Shown: in pieces, positions 5,225 through 28,325 of the stretch
Layout: every line of letters starts with the position of its first letter
Numbering within the stretch: the stretch's first letter is position 1
From: Macrostomum lignano
Lineage: Eukaryota
Direction of reading: 5' to 3'
Assembly (NCBI GenBank): GCA_002269645.1
Contig: NIVC01005028.1
Location: 1-28,325 of the forward strand
Length of the DNA: 28,325 nucleotides
Program-made: the position numbers and the translations under genes
Notes under the pieces: model-generated
What the model was told of the DNA's origin: nothing
What the model saw: only the letters and a program-made list of their open reading frames with translations
The model's database searches: none

Positions 5225-7457
5225 TCACTCCGTTTCGGTTAATGGGATAACAAGCCAGATGTTTCCATTACGAGGAAAAAGGAAACACTTTTTTACGGAA
5301 AACCAGAAATTACAGAGCGAATTTCTTGATAAAAAACCAATACCGAGTAGGGATGAAGTGTAAGGAGTGTTGTTCAATTCTTTGTTAAAAATTAAAACGA
5401 CACCTGAAACGATAGAGCCAGAGATGCATGTAATGCGTACAACTTTACTGTCAATTATACAGCAATTGTTAGGAGTCCTTACCGAATATTCAACAGAAAT
5501 AATAGGATTACTAGTGAGCAAATCGCGAAGAGAAAGCATTTGATTAAGCAAATGAGACGACACAAACCTTGTATTGCGTAAGCGCCTTTTCAGATGCGAC
5601 AAGTAGTTTTCAAATGGAAAGGCGGAGAATCCAAATACATTGCCACGTAGCCTAGCAGCATCAGCCAGGTGAAGCAACACATGAGTATTAAAGGTCATTA
5701 TGGTGTCGCCATACAATTCGGCGGCGTCGAACACAAAAAGGCGCATAGCAGCCTCAGCGAGGGACAGAAGGTGAGTCAGGGGCGAGATCAGAGCAGAATA
5801 TATAGCAGGCAAAGTGGAATAGCAGAAAATGCTTGTACAAAATTTCTAGTAGGAATTTCATAAAGAAGTACGGGCCCACATAGAGAACAAACGTGCGAAA
5901 CTCAGTGGCCTTGAAATGTCCCAATTCTCTGTCAATTCTTCGCGGGCGTCGCTGAAAGTTCGACGGCATGTAAGACGCATGTGACTCAATCTTATCAGAT
6001 AGAGTGGCGATTGCATCGGGACAGAGTTTACAGCGCCGCCCGTTGTCTTCTGCGAACAGGAAATGAAATAACCGACGAGCTATACCCAAGAAGAGAAGGT
6101 GCATTGTTTCCGGAGGGAAGGCGTCCAACATCGTCAAGTTTGGCAGTGAGAGCAGAGGGCTTGGCACTGCCTTCTGGTTGGACTCTCTGTGGAAAGGTAG
6201 GTGGGAGAATTAGAGTGATAGGTAGAGTGAGGAGTTAGGTAGAGGGAAGGGTAGAGGGAAGGATAGAATTAAAGGTAGAGTGATAGGCAGAATAATAAGT
6301 AGAGTGAGGAGTTAGGGGCAGGGGTAGAGGTTGAGTGAGGGGTGAGTGAGGAGTTAGAGGTAGAGTGAGAGAGACTGAGGGGTTAGAATTCGATGTTGAT
6401 TGAGGCAGAGTAGAGGTGGGTAGAGTAGATACTGACTTCTTACCTGTTTTCCCGGTAGACCTCGGCACTCCGACTTTCTCCGGTCACAGTGGGGTACACA
6501 ATCCGACGGTCCACCGTTTTCGCAACGGCCCTGCAGTACGGACACCCATGGAAAGCGTTGTGAGACATGGTAGACATGATGTACGATCGAGCCGGCGAGT
6601 CACAGACGAAAGTAACTCGTCTGATGCGGATTGGAACGGATTCTACGGTGATGAAATCAGTCATGAAGGCATCCAACTCCTTGGCGAATTCCGCTAAATA
6701 GTATATCGGCATTCCGTCGATGCCAAAATGAACGTCGATCTCGTAACCAGTCCTCCCATCTGCGGTAGTTATCGACGTCGGCTTTGTAAACTTCAGCTTG
6801 CCCGTCTGCAGCAGAAAGGCAAGGTTACTCTGGATGCCAAGGTAGGCGAAGTTGCCCATTCCCATGCTGTACTTCATGATTTTGCCTACTCTGCTCTCTG
6901 ATCCACCGACTGTCGCATGCGTCAGTCGGTGCAGGGTTTTGACGACGGGCATCCCACGGCTGTACAGCGCATTGAGCAAAAATTGCATGGCTCGATGTGA
7001 TATGTTGAATCGGACGAAAAACATCAGAAGCTCCTCGTTCAGACTCTCCATACTGGGCCTCAGATTCGCCTGATCGTCGTCATCTTCACTCTCTGGGTAG
7101 TCCATGTCGTCCTCGACTCCATTTTCTTCAAAGTGAACATGGTCGCACATTGCGCCCTGTAAAGAAGCAGGGTGAGAAGTAGAGCGAGGTTGAGTGAGAG
7201 GCAAAGTGAGAAGTTATCAAACATGCACATGCAGACTGAGATGTTACGCTTACCTGCCGGAGCTCGGAGTCGGAGGAAGGGTCCAGTGTGGGTGTATCCA
7301 CACTCTCATCCGGTACGGATGGAGCCTCAAATGGAGCAGAAACTGTCACATGTGGAGCTTGAACAGTCTGTTAAGCGCTCAAATTTTCAGTAAGCCAATT
7401 TTTGAATAGACGGGACATATTACTGTCTCCTTCAGTGCGCCTTCTCTTAGGTGGCAT
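5225..7457 (-). pseudogene. CACTA/CMC (EnSpm/Mirage-type) DDE transposase; 3 coding exons (7457-7254, 7156-6444, 6186-5225)
   Basis: Motifs FGIDGMP, FVCDSPARSY..HNAFHGCPYC, SPLLSLP..FPPETMHLLFLG, FKATEFRTF, LYG..FNTHVLLHL..FSAFPFENYLSHLKR. GT-AG introns 7253-7157 and 6443-6187 join the ORFs in frame. Start MPPKRRR. Lesions: TAA at 7371-7373, +1 C in the run at 5779-5782, in-frame deletion near 6700. Confidence 0.9.
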
Positions 7458-7827: not shown

Positions 7828-9898
7828 ATGTCGTCAAGGGCGGGCATTCGCTTTATTGTTTTCTTCATGGACGACGGCCAAATTCTGGAGAAGTCCGAGG
7901 AGGAACTGACACTCGGCCACTACCAAGGCTTCACGTCCGTTGACTGGCGAGCAATGGACGAGGCACTAATGTACGAGCCAACGCGAATGGAGGTGCGGGC
8001 AGAGTACGGTGATGAGTGGTATTCAGCCATCATACTGCAAGTGGTGCTGGACCCAGAGACAGACAGCGCGCCAACCATTCATCATCTCCGCAGAATGCGC
8101 TTCGAGAAGAAGAAGACGCTGGACTCTCTTCTCAAAGCGATTCGGCGAGTTAATTGCGGTCAGCGGAATCGAATCCCGCTGATCGATGTGAGTCTACCTT
8201 TCCTATTAGTGCATAGTATATGTGAGGGTGAGAGTGAGAGCAGACGAGACTGAGAGTGCGATGCGGTGAGGATAGAGGTGAGCAGCCCTGCTGTATGGGG
8301 TGGAACGCGCCAGAAGGATGAGGCGACGCTGAACGACAGTTTCATTAGGATATTTGCTACGGACATTATCTCAGAATTTGAATGTATCTTCTAAATGTAT
8401 TAATTCACAGAACATGCCAACGTCTGAGGAAAGCGAGAAGGATCAGGAAGGCGACTGCACCCTTACTTCTTCGACACCCCTCGACACACCAAGTGCGCTG
8501 CGACCGACACTGCCGTCACTGCCGATGTCGACACTTCGTTCCACACCCCTCAGCACACCAAGTGGGATGGGACCGACACTGTCGTCAATGCCAACACTGA
8601 TGCAGCGGCCGTTTCGGCAGCTTGTGTCAAATGAGTCCAGAGCAGTCTCTGAAGCTTCTGGAAGCGGTCACGGTGCTTATGAGCCTCCAAGTACCGTCCC
8701 CAAGAGCACAGAGCAGGACCGGCCTGAGGGCGGAGCAGCTTCGAGCGGCCTCGGGTTCCACCCCACAGCGTTGCGGGACATTCCAGCGCAGCTGATGGGC
8801 CTGGGACTTGATCCGGAGTCCATGTGCAGCGTCGCATACCTAGCCACTCTGGCTACTCGCAGAGCTTGCGAGACGCACGAGGCCATAAAACGCTGCAGAG
8901 GGAGTTATCCACCATCATTGAGGCTCTGTCCGTTCAAGTGGCTGTACTCAATCGACGAATGCAGGCACAGCCGCAACACGGGGCAGCCGTGGCAGATTCG
9001 ACTAGGCGCGACAACTTTCGCCCGATCAATTCCTGGCCGGATTACATTCGCTTCATCACTTCACGAGCGGAGCGAAGCAACTTGGTAAGAACACAGTAAA
9101 CATGGCTAATGCACCATATCGCAAATATCGAGAGTTCTGTGATATTATTTCCAAATGAATTTCCCACAAAACAGGCTCCAAGTCTACTCGGATGCCGGGC
9201 TGCTAGTACGCATGACACTGTCAAGCGCTTGCTAAACAAATGCCTGTCGCCGGAACTACAATGCCTCGTGAACTGGTCCGGTAGGAACATGGCCAGACGG
9301 CTTCTGGATGAGCACCCAGATTTCCAAGTGACGGACGCCTTCTTGGCTTTCAGAAATGCGCTGGACGTCTTCCTAGGTGAATTTTTTCCTGCTCAATATC
9401 ATGCCATGCATACCTTTGGGAGTGTTTCAAGGGGTTGTAATTGAGAGTGTGAAAGGGATGAATTCACGAAAAATCGGGGTCGCGTCACAAGCGCTAAATT
9501 TCACAAATTTCACAAGCGCAAAAAAATTCTAAATCTTCGGTGAACACAATTTTTATTGTAAAGTTTTCAACATGTGCATATCTTACTATCTTACTTATAG
9601 CAGTAGTCCCGATCACATCTGATAAGATTCTTAAGCACAAAACTGCAGAGCGTTCAGAACGTGCGAATAAATGCAGAGGGGTGAGAAAATAGTTGAAGGA
9701 AATTAAGCCTGCTATTCCAGTTATTCACTGTACATCCAAAAATCCAATCTCCCTTTTGATTCCTCAGAGGCCATCATCGCGTTGTACCTAGAGGAGGCCA
9801 GGCGGCCTTCCGAGTACGATGTAAAGAAGACGCTGAAAGACCTTCTGAAGCACGTCGCAGAGGCAGGCCGCAAGGCCCCGCCATACGCTCGAGCCTAG
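7828..9898 (+). CDS. Divergently transcribed accessory gene with a C-terminal DUF4806/BEN-like domain; exons 7828-8187, 8411-9084, 9175-9376, 9768-9898; one frameshift in the A4 run at 8887-8890
   Basis: All three introns are GT-AG with compatible phases (0, 0, 1). The C-terminus LLGCRAASTHDTVKRLLNKCLSPELQCLVNWSGRN...EAIIALYL..EYDVKKTLKDLLKHVAEAGRK resembles DUF4806. Ser/Thr/Pro-rich linker and a short heptad-like helix precede it. Confidence 0.7.
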
Positions 9899-12288: not shown

Positions 12289-13715
12289 TCAGCTCACTTG
12301 AGTCAAGTCATTGACATGAGAAAATCTGCGTAGCCCTGGAAAGCAGAACCAATCTCCAACCGCAGATTTTTTGTCAGCTGGTGCCTTCGGAAGTGCGGCC
12401 AAACAAACCTTGATGGTGTTGGGATGCGTTTCTCCGGGCACCACAGCCAGCAGCTGGCGAAAGTCGCCAGCCAGCACCAGCAGCGCTCCTCCGAACGGCC
12501 GGTCGTTGCGCAGCAGATCCCACAGAGACCGCTCGACCATCTCCAGTTCCTTGCGATGCGTCATCGGCGCTTCGTCCCAAACAATGAGCTGCGTATGCCG
12601 CAGCATCTCAGCCAGCTTGCTCCGTCGGCCGATGGAACAGAAAGTATTGTCGAGACGCACCGCGCTGACGGGGATCTTGAACCTGGGCAGGTTGAGACAG
12701 CATTTTATATGCAGAGAAAATACTCGTAATACAATTTGCAGAAGTACTGCGTGTACAAACATGTAAGCTTGTTTATATTGAAGTCATATCTTCAATGAAA
12801 AATACAGAAAATGGCTTATCCTGTAAAAATATTTGATGTCATTAATCTAAGTTATTTTGACATTTTAATTTCTTAGTAAACAGTTTAAAGACAAGTCACA
12901 TGGAGTGTGCGGTCCTTCCCCCGGGACGAATGGTTGCCGCAATTCGAAACGACGCCACGGCAACAGCGATCTGACGCCTTGCTCGAACGCACATTAGCAG
13001 CAACGTCAGCAAGAACGTCTTTCCTGTTCCGCCGGGGGCATCGATAAAATGCAGTCCACCTCCGCCGGTCTCCAGATTGGCCTGCACGGCCTCAAAAATG
13101 ACTCGCTGCTCTTCAGTAAGCATGTCGATCTGGGCCTCGACTTCCGCGTGGAGCTCAGCGGCTTCTTGCGGTGTCGGCAGGCAGTCGGAATGCGGCGACT
13201 CTGAGAAAAAAAGCCTTCCGGACTTAGAATGTCGCCATGTCGCTGCCCTTAGTTATGTACTTGACGACATACTTTATCGCCTTGTCTGTCGCGCAGATCT
13301 CGACGTTCAGGTGACACCTAAACTCGCGCAGCAGCGCAGGGCAGTACGGCACCACCCAGCGGTTGTCAAAGGTGAAATTCGCCTTGTGACCGCCACGCAA
13401 CTTTGCCACCTTCTTCACCGATAAGCCGCCCATCTCGGTTGATCTGCGACGATAGTGCGGGTAGCCGTCCTCTTGAATCATCGTCACTGCCTGGAATTCT
13501 CTCGGATAGCGCTTGCTGCATGCGCCATTCTCCATGCATGACGCGGCTGGATTCAGCTGCATTCCACAGAGACCATGCAGGAGATTCTCAGCGACAAGCT
13601 TGTGCAGGTCCGCGTCGGCAACGGGGTCCGGGAGTTCTGCACTGATGATGGCGTCATACTTATCCGGCTTCAGCTTGACAGCCAACCAAAGCAGTGCGTC
13701 CACGTGGGGAAGACC
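12289..13715 (-). mobile_element. Helitron RepHel remnant A (HUH Rep plus PIF1-like helicase), spliced and internally deleted
   Basis: Rep: GLPHVDALLWL, ISAELPDP, CSKRYPREF, GYPHYRRR, DNRWVVPY, HLNVEIC, IKYVVKYITKGSD. Helicase: FIDAPGGTGKTF, GGRTAHSM|FKIP (intron 12899-12683), IVWDEAPM, PFGG..LAGDFRQLL. The Rep-helicase linker and helicase C-terminal half are missing. Confidence 0.93.
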
Positions 13716-13920
13716 TACGAGGGCACTACGAAAGTTTTTAGCTACATCTAAACAAGCAGCTATGAAACTGAAATTTTCAATATTCTCCACCTGCCTGGAT
13801 GCAGAGCCTTATTCTCTCAAACCAGGTGACAAAGCAGTGGTGCCATTCAGAAGTGGACACCCCTTTCACTATCTTGTCGAATGCATTAGCAGCCTCCTCT
13901 GCAGTCGAAAATCGCCATTT
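13716..13920 (-). mobile_element. mariner (Tc1/mariner) 3' remnant with one TIR and a flanking TA
   Basis: KWRFSTAEEAANAFDKIVKGVSTSEWHHCFVTWFERIRLCIQAGGEY is a typical mariner transposase C-terminus; terminus TA|CGAGGGCACTACGAAAGTTTTT (13716-13740) is irritans-like. The other TIR was not found. Confidence 0.8.
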
Positions 13921-14253
13921 CTAATAAAAGGCAATACAGAGGGGACAGTTTTAAAAGTCTTTTAACAAAAACGCCTTTTGAAATTCATTTGAATCCTATT
14001 CCTACCTACATCAATAGACGAATGAATATAATGGACTGCTAGTCTAGCCAACATCAAGGAATGAAGGCATACAATAGATTGCTAATCTAGTCAAAATAAT
14101 TTATAAAAGCCGAACATACACTACAGTGCTACACAATTGCCTATAGAATTCTCTATTTTTCAATATTCTATACTATTATGTCTATTTTACATATAATAAT
14201 ATTGTATACTGTGTCTATACAATAAATTCAAGTATAGATACAATGCAACTCAC

Positions 14254-14681
14254 TCTTGCAGGCGTACGTTTTGAAGGTCGCTTATTCGCGTTTAGTTACA
14301 CGCCCGTTCACTAACAGTCGGAACTTCATTGCTTCGAAATATTGATCCCTTGGAGTCAACAGAAAGAGACACCTCCATAGGATTATTCGTGCTGTTGTAT
14401 CTCGGATCCAAAGTCTTTACCATTCCGCCGGCTATCCGAACAGCATCGGAAGTATTGCAAACTTCCCAAATAGACCGCAGGTCCTTGCCGAAAACGCTGA
14501 CTCTCATCTCAGCCAAGTCGTCTACCAAGACGAATGAAAAAACTTCGCTTCGGACGTCGTTCTTCATGTAGGACCTGATCTCCTTCAAATCGGTTACAAG
14601 GCCAGTAACCGCCGCATTCATGTAGCCCAGTTTCAGGCCAGAGATATTTGCCTTAATCTTCTTGGTGATTGTAGACGCCAT
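14254..14681 (-). pseudogene. RPA70-like OB-fold ssDNA-binding protein gene (DBD-A plus start of DBD-B), probably Helitron-borne
   Basis: AVTGLVTDLKEIRSY..SEVFSFVLVDDLAEMRVSVFG..VRIAGGMVKTLDPRYNSTNNPMEV follows the RPA70 DBD-A pattern. Past TAA (14292-14294) the frame continues TRISDLQN (cf. FTGIDDLEN at the start of human DBD-B) to a GA|GTGAGT donor at 14253. Confidence 0.75.
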
Positions 14682-16760: not shown

Positions 16761-17530
16761 TTATCAAGTGCAATAATCCTTGGTTTGCCAAGTGCAATAA
16801 TCCTTAGCTTATTAAGAGCAATAATCCTTGGTTTATTAAGTGCAATAATCCTTATTGGTTTGCCAAGTGCAATAGTCCTTAGCTTATTAAGAGCAATAAT
16901 CCTTGGTTTATCAAGTGCAATAATCCTTATTAGTTTGCCAAGTGCAATAGTACTTAGCTTATTTAGAGCGATAATCCTTGGTTTATCAAGCGCAGTAATC
17001 CTTGGTTTATCAAGTGCAGTAATCCTTGGTTTATCAAGTGCAGTAATCCTTGGTTTATCAAGTGCAGTAATCCTTGGCTTATCAAGCGCAGCAATCCTTG
17101 GTTTATCAAGTGCAGTAATCCTTGGCTTATCAAGTGCAGTAATCCTTGGCTTATCAAGCGCAGTAATCTAAGTGATTTTAATTAGTCTTTCAATAAGAGC
17201 TCTCAATAAAAAAGCTTTGGTTTGCCAAGTGCAATAGTCCTTAGCTTATTAAGAGCAATAATCCTTGGTTTATTGACAGCAATAATCCTTGGTTTATTAA
17301 TAGCAATAATCCTTGGCTTATCGAGTGCAGTGATCCTTGGTTTATTAATAGCAATAATCCTTGGCTTATCAAGTGCAGTAATCCTTGGTTTAGTAATAGC
17401 AATAATCCTTGGCTTATCGAGTGCAGTAATCCTTGGTTTATCAATAGCAATAATCCTTGGCTTCTTGAGTGCAGTAATCCTTGGTTTATTAAGAGCAATA
17501 ATCCTTGGCTTATGGAGTGCAGTAATCTAA
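16761..17530. repeat. 24-bp minisatellite (AGTGCAGTAATCCTTGGTTTATCA consensus) in two duplicated blocks
   Basis: Roughly 30 degenerate units. The blocks (about 16761-17170 and 17215-17530) share a start variant and end with the same GCAGTAATCTAAGTG..TTT..TTAG..TTT.AATAA cap. Confidence 0.95.
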
Positions 17531-19979: not shown

Positions 19980-21892
19980 AATACGAGTATAAGATAGTGA
20001 ACAACTACACCACGAACTCAAACTCAGGGCAGCGCCGTGGATGAGGGCGCCGGCCAAGGAACAATAATAAGTTTAATTTCCTTTTCCTATTTTTTAATGA
20101 GCCGCAAGCTTATTTGTTTCATGTACTCATAGTTACGTTAATTCTCTCTCATTCAACAGTTATCTGCTACCTTTGTGCCGGGCCGCATCCGGTCCGGCGT
20201 TGCCCGGCGCTGACTGCGCAGCGGCAGCAGCAGCATCATTAGCGGCAGCAGCAGAATCAGCACCAGTCGGTTCCGCAGCAGCAGCTGCAGCAACAAAGGG
20301 TCACTCTGGACGGCCAGCTGACCTTCGCCCAGCACGGAACCGAGGTGCGCCGTCGGATGGCCCAACGCCGCAGCGCCCCTCAGCGCCCTGGCCCACCGCA
20401 GCACCATTCGGGCCTGCGCTGACTACGGCGGTGCCGTATGGATCAACGGTGCCTCCCCGAGCACCCGGCGCAGCATTGAGAGCCAACAGGCGATCTGTGC
20501 GCGGCTCATCACCGGCTGCTGCAGCACGACGCCCAACCACTTGTCTCTCCGTCTCGCCGACCCCCCACCGATCAGCACCGTCGCCATCAAGCACGCCGTT
20601 AACCTGTTCGAGCGGATCGCCAGGCTCCCGCACGATTGCCCAGCGTACCTCACCGCCATGCGTGCTATTCGCCCACGCCTCAAGTGCCGGAGTTTCGAGG
20701 ACGACGCCGCCGTTGCTGGAGCAATCGACGACACTCGCTTCGAACTTGATCGGTCACGCCCTTTCGCGGATGTTGGCGTCACGCCGCGCAAGGGCTTCCG
20801 ATCTGCGCCACCACGCTGCATACCTCCGACCGCGAGCGCAGCCCCCGCCTCGCTCCCTGGCTTGACTACAGCGAGGGACACGTCGGTTTCGACCTCCAGG
20901 CTTGCAGTGTTCGCAGAGACGCCCCCGCCACTCTCCGGGCCGCAGCCGCAGCTGCGGGCATCGCGCGCGCCGAAGAGTTTCACGCCATTGCCTGGACCGA
21001 CGGCTCCGCCGAAAGCGGCACGGCCAACGGCGGCGGCGCAGCCGTCATCACCTTCAGCGATAACTCCACCTCTACCATCCGCGTCGCGGCCGGCCGCCTG
21101 TGCAGCAGCTTCCAGGCCGAGCTTGCCGCGATCCACGCCACCCTGGCCCACTGCATCCGCGAGCGCCCAGCCCCTCCTCCCAGCATAGCGGTCCTGACCG
21201 ACAGCCTCAGTGCTCTGACCGCTCTGGAGCAGGGACCCGCCGGCCAGACGAACGCCACCGTTGCGGCCTGCTGGCAGACCATCACCGAGTCCGCCGGGCG
21301 CTCCGACTTTCTGTTCTGCTGGGTCCCGGGCCACGCTGACATTGCCAGCAATACCGCTGCTGACCGCGCCGCCGCCGAGGCTGCCGGGCTGCCCCAGGTC
21401 GACGTGCCTATTAGCCTTGCGTCAGCCCGTGCGGCCATCCGCCGCGACCGCCGCGCCTTGGATGCCCGCATTCTGGGCTCTCCCCTCCGGCCCATGCATT
21501 CCCGTAACCGCCGCGAGCACGTCGCCATAAATCAGCTCAGAGCTGGCGTCAGCCCCCTGTGCGGGGCCTCCCGCCTCCGCCTCGGCATCAACGAACGAAG
21601 ACGCCTCCTGCCCTGACTGCGGCGCGCTCGACACGGTCGACCACGTCCTTCGCCGCTGCCCCCGGGGCGACTCTCTGCGCCTCCGGCTGTTCGGCGGCGG
21701 CGACCGGCTGGACGGGCCCGCCGGTAGAATTCTCGCCTTGCTCCGTGGGATGGGGCGCTGGCCCCCGCCCGTTTTAGCGCCGCAGCGCTAAGGGCGCGCT
21801 GGCAGAAGAAGAAGAAAAAGCAGCCGGCTCCGCAGCAGCAGCAGCCTGTCCAGCCGGTTCAGGATGACGACGAAATGCTTCTAGACGTCTGA
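19980..21892 (+). pseudogene. Second copy of the zinc-knuckle/polyQ microprotein gene, pseudogenised and split by a LINE
   Basis: Exon 1 ..YKIVNNYTTNSNSGQRRG*GRRPRNN with donor mutated to A|ATAAGT (20067); acceptor CAACAG|TT (20159); exon 2 ICYLCAGPHPVRRCPALTAQRQQQHH*RQQQNQ..QQQ. After the LINE: QPAPQQQQPVQPVQDDDEMLLDV* (21821-21892). AATAAA at 22005. Start codon not identified. Confidence 0.65.
20298..21816 (+). mobile_element. 5'-truncated non-LTR retrotransposon (I-group/Ingi-like): RT thumb, RNase H, CCHC motif and (GAA)4 tail
   Basis: VTLDGQLTFAQH, IRACADYGGAVW, ARLITGCCSTTP; RNase H WTDGSA..SSFQAELAAI..VLTDSLSAL..WVPGHADIASNTAADRAA; CPDCGALDTVDHVLRRCP; GAAGAAGAAGAA at 21805-21816. Several frameshifts. 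Confidence 0.9.
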
Positions 21893-23372: not shown

Positions 23373-23860
23373 TCAGTCAGTCAGCACCTCAGGGTACACG
23401 AAATTCTTTGTTCTCTCACCGAAGATTCGGACGCGCACGCTGTACGCTCTTGGCCCGAGAAAGCGCCGTACAGCTGGCCGTGAGCAAAGCAGCCGACAGC
23501 CAGGTCGATGCCCACGGTGTCGAGCGACTGGCCCTGCGACTTGTGAATCGTCAGGCAGAACTCGGCTTGACTAGGAACTGCAGCCGCTTGAAGCAGACTG
23601 GCAGGTCAGCATTGTTGGGCTCAAGCGGAATCCTCGGCAGCAGGATCTCATCTCCAGTGAACTGGCCGGCAGCGAATTTGCAGTCTGTCCTCCTGGCAGC
23701 AGAGTGGCTGCGTTTCCAGACGACGCAACAGCCAGGGCGATTTCCCCTCGACTCCGCACAAACGCCGACAGGAGCGTCAAGGGAATGTAGGCCGCCCGAG
23801 CCAACGACAAGATCCGCAGTCACAGCCTCGTAGATGGCCATCTGTTCGGCCGTCAGCATT
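23373..23860 (-). mobile_element. Helitron helicase remnant B (N-terminal stub fused by deletion to the C-terminal motifs)
   Basis: LTAEQMAIYEAV..GGLHSLDAP, then ILLPRIPL..FKRLQFLVK, (M)TIHKSQGQSLDTVGIDL..CFAHGQLYGAFS, RTKNFVYPEVLTD* (stop 23373-23375): canonical Helitron helicase C-terminus with frameshifts. Confidence 0.92.
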
Positions 23861-24780
23861 GGCAGTCCCACCCGATGAAAACGTGACTGTGGTCTAGAAT
23901 CGTAAATAAAGCGTTTGCATCGTATTTGAATCGCTTTTGAAGCGTTTTGGAGTTGCACTGGGGGATAGGAGGGTACTGTGTGATTCAAAACCGACGAGAT
24001 GTCACGGTACACGTAAAAGACGCGCGTTTCTGAATAACTTTGTTTCTGAATAACTTTGAAGCGTTTTGTGGAAACGCGTCAAAAACGATTCAGGTGACGC
24101 GTTTTAGCGGCGTTACTGAATCGCTTTGACTCGCACTTAAATCGTTTGAATAGAGCTATCGCTGAAGCGTATCTGACGCGTTGTTGACGCGCTTTTGACT
24201 CGGAGTTGTAATTTGAGAAGTTTTTAATATTTGAAGCATTTCCGATTCTCTTCTGCTTCTCGTAGTCCTTATAGTACCATATTTTGTAGAAAGGAATCGC
24301 TACAAGAACTGTAGCAGAGCACTCAGTGCAGTTCGAATAATAAAAAAAAATTGTAACTCAATTTAACTACTAAATTTATTTAGGGTGATATGCACTTTAT
24401 TTAATTATTATTCCAGATTTATTTGATTGTAGTACATATCAATTTGAACACAATAAGATGCTCCTGAGTCTAAAATAATATTAATTATATTAAAATTACT
24501 AGGGCACAATCTTGGCGGCAGTTAATTTACTAAGTCTAATGTTTAAATTCGGTTTGGATTAGCTCTACGTGTATATGGCATATAGGGAAAATATTGTATT
24601 ATCGGATAGCACTGGACTCAAAACACCCGCACTTAAAACCGCGCCAAAAATGACCCACTTAACCTCTAATACTATCTGCAAAAAGGTAACCAAAATAATA
24701 GAGGAGTATATAAATTATAGACAATAATTTTCCTAGAACTAAACATAAAAGCGTTTTTCGCCTAACCCTATATTTTATTA

Positions 24781-25020
24781 CAAAAACTTGACAAACGTAA
24801 CAAAAAAAACTTTGACAAAAGTAGCCAAAAAACTTGACAAAAGTAACCAAAAAATTTGACAAAAGTAACAAAACACTTGACAAAAGTAGCCAAAAAACTT
24901 GACAAAAGTAAGAAAAGACTTGACAAAAGTAACCAAAAAATTTGACAAAAGTAACAAAAGACTTGACAAAAGTAACCAAAAAACTTGACAAAAGTAACAA
25001 AAGACTCGACAAAAGTAACA
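24781..25020. repeat. 21/22-bp tandem repeat (CAAAAAACTTGACAAAAGTAA[C]), about 11 units
   Basis: Direct reading; largely alternating 21- and 22-bp units. Confidence 0.95.
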
Positions 25021-25303
25021 AAAATATAACAAATAGCATAAAAGGCTTAACAAAATGCCCATGCCCATTAGCTCTATGAGGCGTGAATGTTTTCGCTGTT
25101 GTGTGGTTGTTAGGGTGGAGGTATTCATCTGCAAATAATCGCGATGTACATGTGTCGATGTACACTGATGTACATTGCAAATATATAAATCGTTGCACGT
25201 GGTTTTAGCCTTTAGCTACTTCATGTGTTTTTGGTCTTGCTTAACTTATAAGTTAACTTAGCTCGTATAACTTCTTGCCTTCTAATGCTCTCAGTTTACA
25301 GTT

Positions 25304-27202
25304 TTAATCAGCAGTCACCTCGTCGGACTTTTTTGCACGGCGCCTCTGCTCACTGCGCAAGCGTCGGAACACTAGCTGAATTTCCGCAGACGTCACTGCA
25401 GCTCCTGTGACTCGCACCAGGTATGACTGCACAACGTCCAGGAAACTAGATGGCACCAGTTCGCGGGTGCCCTGGTTGCGAGTCGGACCGGTCAAAGATT
25501 TTGTCGCGATGTCCTCTTCTGAGAAAACCGCGCGCAGTAGAGCCCGCACAAGCAGAAGCTGCGTGTGGCTGGACCGCATCCGCTTGTTTTCTTCAGTTGC
25601 GGACACTACCTCCGAGTAGCTTCTTGCCTTGACCTACAAGTGGAAGCAAGGATTTGGACAAGTCTACTGTGTGTTGGAAGTAATCGTCAAATGTTCATCA
25701 CCGTGATAATCATCAGAAAGAAATATACCTTGTATGGGTGCCCTGGAATCAGGGAGACCATATCTGGCATATCGGTCACGGCACCGGTGCCGCTGGTGTC
25801 GGCATCAGCAGTGGCGGCAACATCGGCAACGGGCAGCGGGAATGCAGTAGCGGCAACTGACACAGTGGCCGCAGCTGTATGTGGCGCGTCCAATGGAATG
25901 CCCATCAGCTCAGCTAGCATTCCAGACGCAAAATCGCCCGTGTCTGTGACTGGCTGTGCTGCTGGTGCATTGCTGCTGGCTGCGTCTTTAATGGCATCAG
26001 CAAAATGGGCGATGCGGAGAAATTGCGCCCTGAATGCGGCCTTTGAAGAGGAACTGTCATGCTGTACCTTAGTAATAGAAGGAGTAAAGAATTGACTGTA
26101 CAACCTTGAAATTTCTACAATAGCATGCGCGAATATAAATTTGGGCCCCGTGTTGCCAACCTGGACCAACTCCGCTTGTAGCTTGTCCAGCTCCTTCTCC
26201 AGGCCTGAAATACGGAGGCGCATTGCAGTGCTCTCCTGCTGCAGCCTGGCGTTGACTAGGTCCTTCGCGGCGCAATCCTCCTTGAGCTGCTGATGCTCAA
26301 TTTGTAAACATTTCATTGTGTGCCGCACACTCTGCAGCTCCGCGTCGCGCACATGGCACTGCGTGCAATCAAGTGACACTGAAAATTCGGGATTTTGGCA
26401 GACTTCGGAACAATTTTTGGCGAACTCGTGATTACCGTTTAGGTGCTGGCCCCATAAAAGGACAGTCCTGTGCACATTGCTTCTGGTTCGGCTTCTTAGC
26501 CCATTGCAGCAAAACGTGATACCGCTAGTGAAACCCTCTTCGTCAATGCATCTGAGCAATCAATTGAGACGCACCTGTCTCGACTGAAGTGGCTTGCATG
26601 GAAGCAGTAGCTGTGGCGGCAGCCTGCCTATTAGGAGCAGCGGCGACAGCGGCAGCCTCCTTACCAGCAGCGGCGACAGCGGCAGCATGCTTAGCAGCGG
26701 CAGCCTGCTTACCAGCAGGGGTGGCGGAGGTGGAGGCGATGGGCTTCGGGACGGTGGATGCAGCAGCAGCTTGGGGGTCCAGATGTAGTACAGGTGACCC
26801 TGTCTGAAAGTCTGTGAGGTAGAATGGCTCAACCTCAGTATGTAAGAGGCTCGGCTTTTGTGACTATGCGTCAATGAACCTGAGCAGTCAATTGACACGC
26901 ACCTGTCCAGACTGGAATGGCTTGCATGGAAGCAGCGGTGTGACGCTCGGGATGGAGGTGGCCGGCTCCACGGCTGTCTGATATAGTGGCTCCTCAACAG
27001 TGGCTGGCTCAGCAGTTTGGGCACTTGCTGATGCAGTTGCGGAGCCAATCGAACCACGTCTTGGCAGCTTTGACGGTGGTTTCAGGCGTGACACACTGTG
27101 TGGCAGGTTCTTAGGTCGGCGACCCCGCGCTTTGAGGTGCACCGCCTCGGAACAGCCGTCAATTATGCGACTAGGACTGTGCATGTTCCTACGCTTTGGC
27201 AT
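25304..27202 (-). CDS. Apparently intact 5-exon gene (about 471 aa): basic N-terminus, Ala-rich region, CxxC plus coiled coil, C-terminal BEN domain; exons 27202-26903, 26803-26575, 26378-26161, 26067-25729, 25633-25304
   Basis: GT-AG introns with compatible phases (0, 1, 0, 0) give 1416 nt without internal stops. The C-terminus LLVRALLRAVFSEEDIATKSLTG..RELVPSSFLDVVQSYL..SAEIQLVFRRLRSEQRRRAKK fits the BEN pattern. The 93-bp intron 26160-26068 is stop-free and least certain. Confidence 0.72.
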
Positions 27203-27419
27203 GCTTCTGTAGGTGTGATAGGAGGGACGTACCTGACATTCATATAGGTGTGCGGATTGACGTTAATACAGAACAGAATGCGAAAGAAGCAACAAAGTAA
27301 ATTTCTCGAACCATGCAGCGCATGCAATTAATGCGCTGTGTGGATAACGCCTCATCCAGGCGTCCGACAGCCCCAGGATGGCTGTAAAGCCAGTGCCTCC
27401 CCCGAAAAATTCCGCCATC

Positions 27420-28325
27420 CCCCATGAGCCTTCATATCTCAACAATTCCCATAGTAGGCCTTAACAACTCAGAAATTCCCTCAGTAAGCATCGACATTGC
27501 AGCAATTAAACTCGAGCCTTGACAGCTGCGCAATTCTTCCCGCCCAGTAAGCCTTGATATCTCAGCGATTCCCCCAGTAAGCTTTGGCATCTCAGCAATT
27601 CACCCAGTAGGCCTTGGCATCTCAGATATTCCCCCAGTAAGCCTTGACATCTCATCATAAGCCTCATAAGCCTCATTAGCCTTGAAATCTATCTTTCGCC
27701 GAAAGCTTTGACCTGTCAGCAATTCCCGAAGAGCTATGTCTGACAAGACGATTGTTCTATAATTGAACCCAAACCCTAACCATAACCCTAACCTGAAGAC
27801 GAGTCACAGCATTTCAGCAACTCCCTCTCAGCCTAAGAATTTCAGCAATTCGACCATGATTTTGAAATCTAAAAATTTTCCCAATGAGCCTTAAAATTTA
27901 GCGACCAACCTATCTTGGCAATTCCACATGAGTCATGGTTGAAAACTAACCCTAAGCCTGCCAAGTCACAGCGTTTCAGTAAGTCCCACCATGAACCGTA
28001 GTATTTCAACAATTACCCTTGACAATTCTTGAATTTCAGCTATTCCCAATGAGTCTTTGACATCTCAGCCAGTCTCATGTGAACCTTAGCATCTCAGCAA
28101 TACCCAAATAGCCCACAGTCTACAGCATTACAGGGATCCCCGTGAGCGTTGAAATTCCAGTGATTCCATAATGAGCATTGATATCTCAGAAATATCTCAG
28201 AAACTCCTAATTGAGCCACAAAATTTAGGCAATATCCCAAGTCTTGCAAACACAGCAGTTGCCCGAGCACAGTATAATCCAGATACCCCCCATGAGCTTT
28301 GGTATTCCCAATGAAGTCTTTAATG
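27420..28325. repeat. Degenerate 30-bp tandem repeat (CTCAGCAATTCCCCCAGTAAGCCTTGACAT consensus) running to the window end
   Basis: Four clear units at about 27541-27656 with more diverged units on both sides; interspersed AACCCTAAC motifs. Confidence 0.8.

Follow-up and report, generated by a model that had tools for sequence, protein, structure and literature searches.

BEN domains are sequence-specific DNA binders of animal repressors and insulator proteins, and they have undergone lineage-specific expansions that are unexplained. Drosophila Insensitive and Elba1/Bsg25A, and human BEND5 and BEND6, are DNA-binding repressors with a single BEN domain and a coiled coil upstream of it. Mobile elements also encode accessory DNA-binding proteins: TnpA of maize En/Spm (CACTA), a transposon of the CACTA/Mirage/Chapaev (CMC) superfamily, binds subterminal repeats and is a non-catalytic product encoded beside, or alternatively spliced with, the transposase. 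Here we compare with these systems a minus-strand gene of the flatworm Macrostomum lignano, at positions 25304-27202 of contig NIVC01005028.1; the whole stretch analysed, 28,325 nucleotides long, is referred to as the window. The predicted protein shares with the animal BEN proteins a single C-terminal BEN domain behind a long helix, but its match lies below the Pfam gathering score, its structure-based identity to them is 11-22%, and its family is confined to one flatworm lineage and linked to transposons, with DNA binding that is putative. We lean, at somewhat better than an even chance, towards the view that it is a stand-alone, transposon-derived coiled-coil/BEN module; any activity it has would be exerted in trans by a DNA-binding oligomer. 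Most likely the gene is what remains of, or was spun off from, a DNA transposon, because its only detectable relatives are the C-termini of M. lignano transposase proteins. More than half of the M. lignano genome is repetitive (PMC5730564).

The open frame and its predicted protein

Frame inspection places the start codon at 27202-27200 and the stop codon, TAA, at 25306-25304, with three open segments on the minus strand: 27202-26888, 26559-25687 (290 codons) and 25633-25304 (109 codons plus TAA). When the region was shuffled 1000 times with its dinucleotide content preserved, only 2 shuffles reached a stop-free run of 290 codons, which is thus rare at this composition. Runs as long as exons 1 and 4 (100-110 codons) appeared in more than 90% of the same shuffles, so that exon 1 has no statistical support of its own and exon 4, the last exon, rests on homology and not on its openness. 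The module contains no stop and no frameshift, and the uninterrupted, strand-consistent gene of the preliminary description is borne out. Its 3' two-thirds, comprising the 290-codon segment, a 95-nt intron and the 109-codon last exon, is well supported. The parts of the gene are as follows, a slash marking splice junctions here and below.

26903-27202, minus strand: candidate first coding exon, 100 codons, with a basic N-terminus (MPKRRN...KARGRRPK) and the donor CAG/GTGCGT
26575-26811, minus strand: candidate exon 2, 79 codons, Pro/Leu-rich, between GT-AG introns of 91 and 129 nt, with CAG/GTGCGT donors
25729-26445, minus strand: main exon (exon 3), 239 codons in splice models B and C (described below), with the frame open to 26559
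26158-26367, minus strand: CTQC motif followed by a helix of about 70 residues (AlphaFold helix, residues 28-96 of a construct of exons 3 and 4)
25304-25633, minus strand: last exon, 109 codons plus TAA, with most of the BEN domain

The last exon scores 15.1 bits against the Pfam BEN family (PF10523; E 0.027), which is below the gathering cut-off of 23.2 bits, and its relatives score equally weakly at the equivalent place (12.7-18.2 bits). When a three-sequence profile was compared with PDB sequences, the BEN structures 4ix7, 7yul and 4x0g came within the top four (E 0.065-1.5), all in the same register. AlphaFold modelled the last exon with a pLDDT of 77.7 and a pTM of 0.64, from an alignment of three sequences. 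In a Foldseek search of the PDB with this model, ranks 1-13 were all BEN domains, those of Bsg25A/Elba1, NACC1, BEND6, Insensitive (Insv) and BANP, with probabilities of 0.89-1.00, TM scores of 0.45-0.61 and root-mean-square deviations (RMSD) mostly of 2.3-4.0 Å (one of 5.8 Å); the next match had a probability of 0.33. The predicted structure is thus superposable on solved BEN domains, and for 4x0g, 4ix7 and 7yul, to whose chains the profile also aligns in one register, the RMSD is 2.5-2.9 Å over 76-89 columns. We regard the BEN fold of the C-terminal domain as established at the level of prediction, from the modelled structure and the weak but consistent profile matches and not from the Pfam threshold; the BEN domain that had been proposed for this gene stands in that sense.

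The main exon holds, in order, the CxxC motif, the coiled coil, an Ala-rich linker modelled with low confidence and the start of the BEN domain. An AlphaFold model of exons 3 and 4 has a helix of about 70 residues right after CTQC, then the low-confidence Ala-rich linker, then the BEN domain with pLDDT mostly 72-88. The helix also gives weak matches to Pfam coiled-coil families (ATG16, Tropomyosin), which agrees with the coiled coil named earlier for this protein; the model is consistent with a coiled coil that would serve oligomerisation.

Relatives and a recently active transposon

An exhaustive phmmer search of 1.84 billion protein representatives (E <= 0.001) returned exactly two proteins, A0A1I8I0H8 and A0A1I8JBV9, both from M. 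lignano. The C-terminus of A0A1I8I0H8 matches the last exon with an E value of 2e-13 and 55% identity over the BEN part, and A0A1I8JBV9 matches the BEN part with an E value of 3e-5 and 31-35% identity. Word-indexed protein searches with the full spliced model, the BEN alignment and the CMC-like open reading frame (ORF) of the window returned nothing, which carries little weight as they missed the known relatives too. In a BLASTP comparison run without composition correction, the window protein is colinear with A0A1I8JBV9 from CxxC to the end of the BEN domain (E 1e-14), the CxQC motif and the coiled coil behind it being present in both, and a FADAIK block additionally joins exon 3 to A0A1I8I0H8. 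The order CxxC, coiled coil, Ala-rich linker and BEN-like domain is therefore common to the window gene, the C-terminus of A0A1I8I0H8 and the Mlig001703 family (A0A1I8JBV9, 1314 aa; PAA62969.1, 502 aa). With that family the window gene also shares the position and phase of its last intron; the counterpart, in contig NIVC01000822.1, is 84 nt long, and the flanking residues read PYK/VKARS in the window and NIL/VPALT in the relative, K being aligned to L and V to V. What distinguishes the window gene is that it has no Cys/His zinc finger, no adjacent transposase and no terminal inverted repeats that we could find, and that its 5' exons are unrelated.

In both relatives the module is the C-terminus of a gene model that also holds a transposase-like part with the signature ...ICPVYLS...D(A/S)P(A/Q)R...GCxxC. 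This we take to resemble the DFPAY...CPxC motif of CACTA/EnSpm transposases. The transposase-like part is weakly similar to the window ORF 5754-6167 (31% over 67 aa, E about 1e-3), and the adjacent, overlapping ORF 5225-5812 carries a match to DUF4218. On these sequence resemblances we call the relatives' transposase part CMC-like with moderate confidence. Our literature search found no paper describing BEN domains or modules on CMC-type transposons, which is absence of evidence only. The gene had been suggested to be Helitron/CMC cargo or else a domesticated regulator, and the link to CMC-like elements survives, because the relatives are C-terminal modules of CMC-like proteins; the Helitron half of the cargo suggestion is taken up with the surroundings of the gene.

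The Zn-finger/coiled-coil/BEN part lies, together with a multi-exon transposase gene, on a 9102-bp block that occurs with sharp ends at two M. lignano loci.

NIVC01000822.1, 7391-16489: copy of the 9.1-kb transposon
NIVC01001884.1, 3626-12716: second copy, 99.76% identical to the first

Given this identity at two loci, the 9.1-kb element is evidently mobile and recently active. It has the terminal inverted repeats CCCGCTGGAAAA and the termini CCCGCTGGAAAA...TTTTCCAGCGGG; a 3-bp duplication (AAG) at one locus is a probable target duplication, the other locus being ambiguous. The element contains 20/40-bp and 22/44-bp arrays and, in its two subterminal regions, many TTTACGCC/GGCGTAA-type repeats in opposite orientation. 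En/Spm is alike in having many short subterminal repeats in both orientations. The degenerate motif [TGA]ACGC[CTG] is enriched in NIVC01000822.1 solely in these two subterminal regions. Between the window and the 9.1-kb element there is no nucleotide similarity except one 47-nt match elsewhere in the window. Compared with the UniProt model, the copy in NIVC01000822.1 changes frame within the zinc finger.

The two public annotations of M. lignano treat the module differently. WormBase-type models splice the transposase and the Zn-finger/coiled-coil/BEN parts into one protein. The GenBank annotation, described in the genome paper as transcript-based (PMC5730564), lists transposase products of 709-930 aa, reading through a donor, separately from PAA62969.1, a stand-alone Zn-finger/coiled-coil/BEN protein of 502 aa. 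A free-standing module thus has a precedent, and the module may be a second product of the transposon. Separate transposase and BEN products are reminiscent of TnpD and TnpA in En/Spm, by analogy only.

Conservation between the window gene and A0A1I8I0H8 is patchy, with LRALLRAVFSEED identical at 13 of 13 positions against 55% overall, and both frames are open. Together these features imply descent from a lineage under selection for protein function, whether that lineage was transposon or host being indistinguishable from them. One could ask whether the gene has been domesticated, the flatworm now keeping it as a host regulator that, like Insensitive/Elba or BEND5/6, serves as a repressor or insulator protein with sequence specificity. 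The 13 identical residues would then mark a selected lineage, and the frame is uninterrupted amid decayed elements, with an ATG exon of its own, a basic N-terminus resembling a nuclear localisation signal and no transposase adjacent. Selection within active transposon lineages accounts for the conservation equally well, however, and among the 1.84 billion representatives there is no orthologue beyond the transposon-linked M. lignano models; the gene moreover sits in repeat-rich DNA beside a cluster of subterminal-type repeats, and its 5' half is changing by duplication and in-frame minisatellite growth. We consider domestication quite unlikely, and return to the transposon-derived module.

Exon-intron models

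The sole firm part of the splice model is the last intron (25728-25634, 95 nt, phase 0), which has the canonical sites AAG/GTATAT...TTGTAG/GTC. Upstream of it many solutions fit: an open frame is kept by 42,968 GT-AG models if no more than two introns are allowed, and by 12,551 if up to three are allowed and the sites are filtered for quality. The 471 codons proposed in the preliminary description are one of these tens of thousands of splicings, and the versions of that length use weak sites (for example CCA/GTCTGG with CACTAG/CGG); models with stronger sites give 527 or 448 codons. The most coherent is model B, of 527 codons, with strong sites, exons at 27202-26903, 26811-26575, 26445-25729 and 25633-25304, and introns of 91, 129 and 95 nt, sizes that agree with the 79-106-nt introns of the Macrostomum relatives. 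Model C (448 codons) is model B minus exon 2, which is therefore optional. In both the acceptor of the main exon is TTTTATGGGGCCAG/CAC. Exon 3 has no ATG before 26316, a position beyond CxxC, so an upstream ATG exon is needed, and the exon at 27202 is the only one able to bring the CxxC region into the protein.

Exons 1 and 2 have no homologue and match no Pfam family. Candidate exon 2 contains an in-frame tandem repeat of 30 bp, or 10 codons (26616-26698; Tandem Repeats Finder, TRF), and a 72-nt internal duplication links it to exon 1: copy A (26864-26935) and copy B (26536-26607) lie 328 nt apart, are 86-88% identical, and each comprise an exon end, its donor and the start of the intron. In model B both copies read LLPCKP(F/L)QS(G/R)Q in frame up to the donor GTGCGT. 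Taken together, the repeat and the duplication show the 5' half of the gene to be evolving through duplication. Introns of 23 or 39 nt at the duplicated donor were rejected; they meet a stop or give no in-frame join to exon 3 (the best acceptor tried being 26445), and they are also far below the 79-106 nt of the relatives.

Just before the ATG at 27202, at a distance of 4 nt and within 27203-27235 on the minus strand, there is a strong acceptor, CCTCCTATCACACCTACAG/, which is possibly a spliced-leader or 5' untranslated region acceptor. A strong donor, CAG/GTACGT, stands just 26 nt upstream of it, a gap too short for a normal intron. The acceptor can also be taken as a sign that the module is the 3' part of a larger, possibly complete transposase gene whose upstream exons lie beyond the right edge of the window, in which case the 30-bp minisatellite of about 1 kb upstream would occupy an intron, and the exon that opens with the ATG at 27202 would be either fortuitous or an alternative start. 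The WormBase-type models, which join module and transposase exons, speak for such a gene, as does an exon 1 without homology or statistical support, and average M. lignano introns are 1.1-1.4 kb long (PMC5730564). The transcript-based models, by contrast, keep the two parts separate; in NIVC01000822.1 the transposase ends about 0.5 kb upstream of the module exons with no minisatellite between them, and nothing transposase-like is found in 27203-28325. On balance we find a larger gene unlikely, and retain the stand-alone module.

A further view is that the locus is a silent relic, with a frame that is open only because the copy is young, upstream "exons" that are chance open frames, and no mRNA or protein. 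Open runs of 100 codons are indeed the rule at this composition, the splice models that fit number in the thousands, and an exact look-up of five window ORFs in a public gene-call collection gave no record; the GenBank annotation of M. lignano deliberately omits transcripts that overlap repeats (PMC5730564). Long neutral decay is nonetheless difficult to square with a 290-codon frame and a conserved intron with intact splice sites. We rate a silent relic as possible, though on the unlikely side; it overlaps the transposon-derived module that we prefer and does not exclude it.

Surroundings of the gene

The features next to the gene, from its 5' to its 3' side, are listed here.

27418-27654, no strand: 30-bp minisatellite (TRF) on the upstream side of the ATG, 216 nt away; degenerate copies extend it to 28171 or beyond
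24780-25024, no strand: 21/22-bp minisatellite (43-bp dimer; TRF), 280 nt past the stop codon
23897-24250, no strand: 11-bp motif, approximately TGAMKCGYTTT, densely clustered and present in both direct and inverted copies
23384-23883, minus strand: Helitron/PIF1-type helicase remnant ("helicase B"), about 500 nt, internally deleted, a neighbour and not part of the gene

The two flanking arrays had been noted before and are recovered by TRF at the positions given. About 15% of the M. lignano genome consists of tandem repeats (PMC5730564), so arrays beside a gene are unremarkable in this species. The 24780-25024 array contains 11 head-to-tail CTTGACAAAAGTA cores where about one is expected, all matches lying inside the array. 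A CTTGACA heptamer is common to the 22-bp and 30-bp units, with a chance, roughly estimated, of about 0.05, and we did not take it as evidence. Short interstitial telomere-like CCCTAA runs occur in or beside the minisatellites at 27775-27800, 27935-27950 and 24762-24770.

The cluster at 23897-24250 comprises six direct families and 13 inverted pairs, and region 23900-24300 is the only part of the window enriched in [TGA]ACGC[CTG] (12 per 200 nt, against a mean of 0.64). It lies 1.05-1.4 kb past the stop codon, adjoining the helicase remnant; the equivalents in NIVC01000822.1 lie 0.5-1.0 kb past the stop. As a core motif shared by the window and NIVC01000822.1, TGACGC alone is only suggestive, four in 200 nt being reached in 41 of 5000 permutations. 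By its sequence organisation the cluster is a candidate for the 3' subterminal repeats of the gene's own element. It looks as such a region is expected to look, which suggests, without proving it, that the gene lies in the 3' portion of an element of broadly the same type as the 9.1-kb transposon, rearranged or with internal deletions. The start of an ORF at 23551-24012 runs through the cluster and is probably not coding.

Helicase B does lie where it had been placed, co-oriented with the gene (23883-23384 on the minus strand) and 1.4 kb past its stop codon. Over 35 aa it shares 57% identity with the beginning of the Helitron A helicase elsewhere in the window, and its C-terminal piece gives a weak match to UvrD_C_2 (E 0.0099). 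Helitrons capture genes, and co-orientation and proximity could mean that the BEN gene is a fragment captured by the Helitron of this remnant. We hold this to be very improbable: helicase B is an internally deleted piece of about 500 nt without a Rep domain, the 22-bp array and the block of subterminal-type repeats stand between it and the gene, and the gene's relatives are without exception associated with a DDE-type element, none with Helitrons. The Helitron part of the cargo suggestion is not supported, the helicase being a dead fragment with a repeat block between it and the gene.

A possible mode of action

The module, consisting of CxxC, coiled coil, flexible linker and BEN domain, would be the C-terminal accessory part of a Macrostomum-type CMC-like transposon. 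Its protein would oligomerise through the coiled coil, and its BEN domain would bind a short DNA motif. In the parent elements the module might recognise short subterminal repeats and bring the ends to the transposase, in a role like that of TnpA; we infer this binding of subterminal repeats from En/Spm, which serves as a working analogy only, as we claim no relationship to TnpA in sequence or fold and the flatworm termini are CCCGCTGG, not CACTA. The copy in the window would have lost its transposase by internal deletion or rearrangement, with minisatellites growing around it, or would never have had one within reach. In that case the 22-bp array would have expanded later, inside the element, and the 3' boundary of the element would probably be the cluster at 23897-24250. 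If expressed, the window protein could act only in trans, either helping related elements or competing with and repressing them.

Several observations weigh against a transposon-derived module of this kind. In the 1.1 kb upstream of the gene within the window (27203-28325) there is no transposase-like coding, only minisatellite interspersed with telomere-like runs of CCCTAA. Inverted pairs between 24000-25300 and 27200-28325 do not exceed 9 nt, the M. lignano terminal repeat CCCGCTGGAAAA was searched for in the window and is absent, and the window contains no 5' subterminal cluster. The 5' end of the gene's element may lie outside the window, and the cluster at 23897-24250 could belong to another element. 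The gene itself has at best a degenerate form of the Zn finger found in the M. lignano family, and its exons 1 and 2 are without counterpart. The CMC assignment of the relatives is based on weak similarity and motifs, with termini that are not CACTA, and Pfam finds no transposase family on A0A1I8JBV9.

More generally, and quite tentatively, we propose by analogy that flatworm CMC-like transposons use a coiled-coil/BEN protein for end recognition, binding subterminal repeats of 11-22 bp, and that the window gene is a free-standing, trans-acting derivative, either a repressor of related elements or a recruited chromatin/insulator factor. If true, this would be a live example of BEN-domain regulators arising from mobile elements. 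A divergent BEN family tied to a recently active DNA transposon, together with a free-standing copy, offers a concrete path by which the end-binding module of a transposon could become a host regulator. A module that reads subterminal repeats would also provide a handle on transposon control in Macrostomum, a regenerating flatworm model. For annotation the lesson is that the gene would be missed by Pfam thresholds and by repeat-masked gene sets alike.

Other features of the window

No second copy of the family was found when six-frame pieces of the window were compared with the family profile, so that the second BEN-like gene reported for the window is not upheld. It is possibly ORF 9109-9444 on the plus strand, which has a BEN-like-looking stretch, VKRLLNKCLSPELQCLVNWSGRN; we rejected this candidate, as Pfam gives it no BEN match and hhalign aligns it to the family profile with a probability of just 1.3%. 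Rfam and tRNA scans of the window gave no match.

Most genes neighbouring the BEN gene had also been described as broken. This is uncertain, because related flatworm transposon genes carry introns of 79-106 nt and some apparent breaks may be introns. Three overlapping or adjacent CMC-like transposase ORFs on the minus strand at 5225-7204, with a DUF4218 match (E 8e-5) and a FVCDSPAR...GCPYC motif, are such a case, in that the gaps between them may be short introns and not lesions. These ORFs are 18 kb from the BEN gene and distantly related to the transposase of its relatives (31%, 67 aa).

Helitron A, on the minus strand at 12289-14681, comprises a PIF1 helicase fragment (E 1e-24) and upstream ORFs, and one ORF of this region has a weak, sub-threshold OB-fold match (tRNA_anti-codon, E 0.066). 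On the plus strand at 20300-21730, a segment of 63-69% GC matches RNase H-containing retroelement parts of the chimeric protein A0A1I8I0H8 with 36-60% amino acid identity, and this similarity marks it as a probable retrotransposon fragment. At 16761-17527 lies a minisatellite with about 32 copies of a 24-bp unit, in which the long hydrophobic repeat ORFs read on the plus strand are probably non-coding. Finally, a 148-nt direct repeat (1515-1660 and 2457-2604; 98% identity, 940 nt apart) could have arisen by recent duplication or could mark the two ends of a small element.

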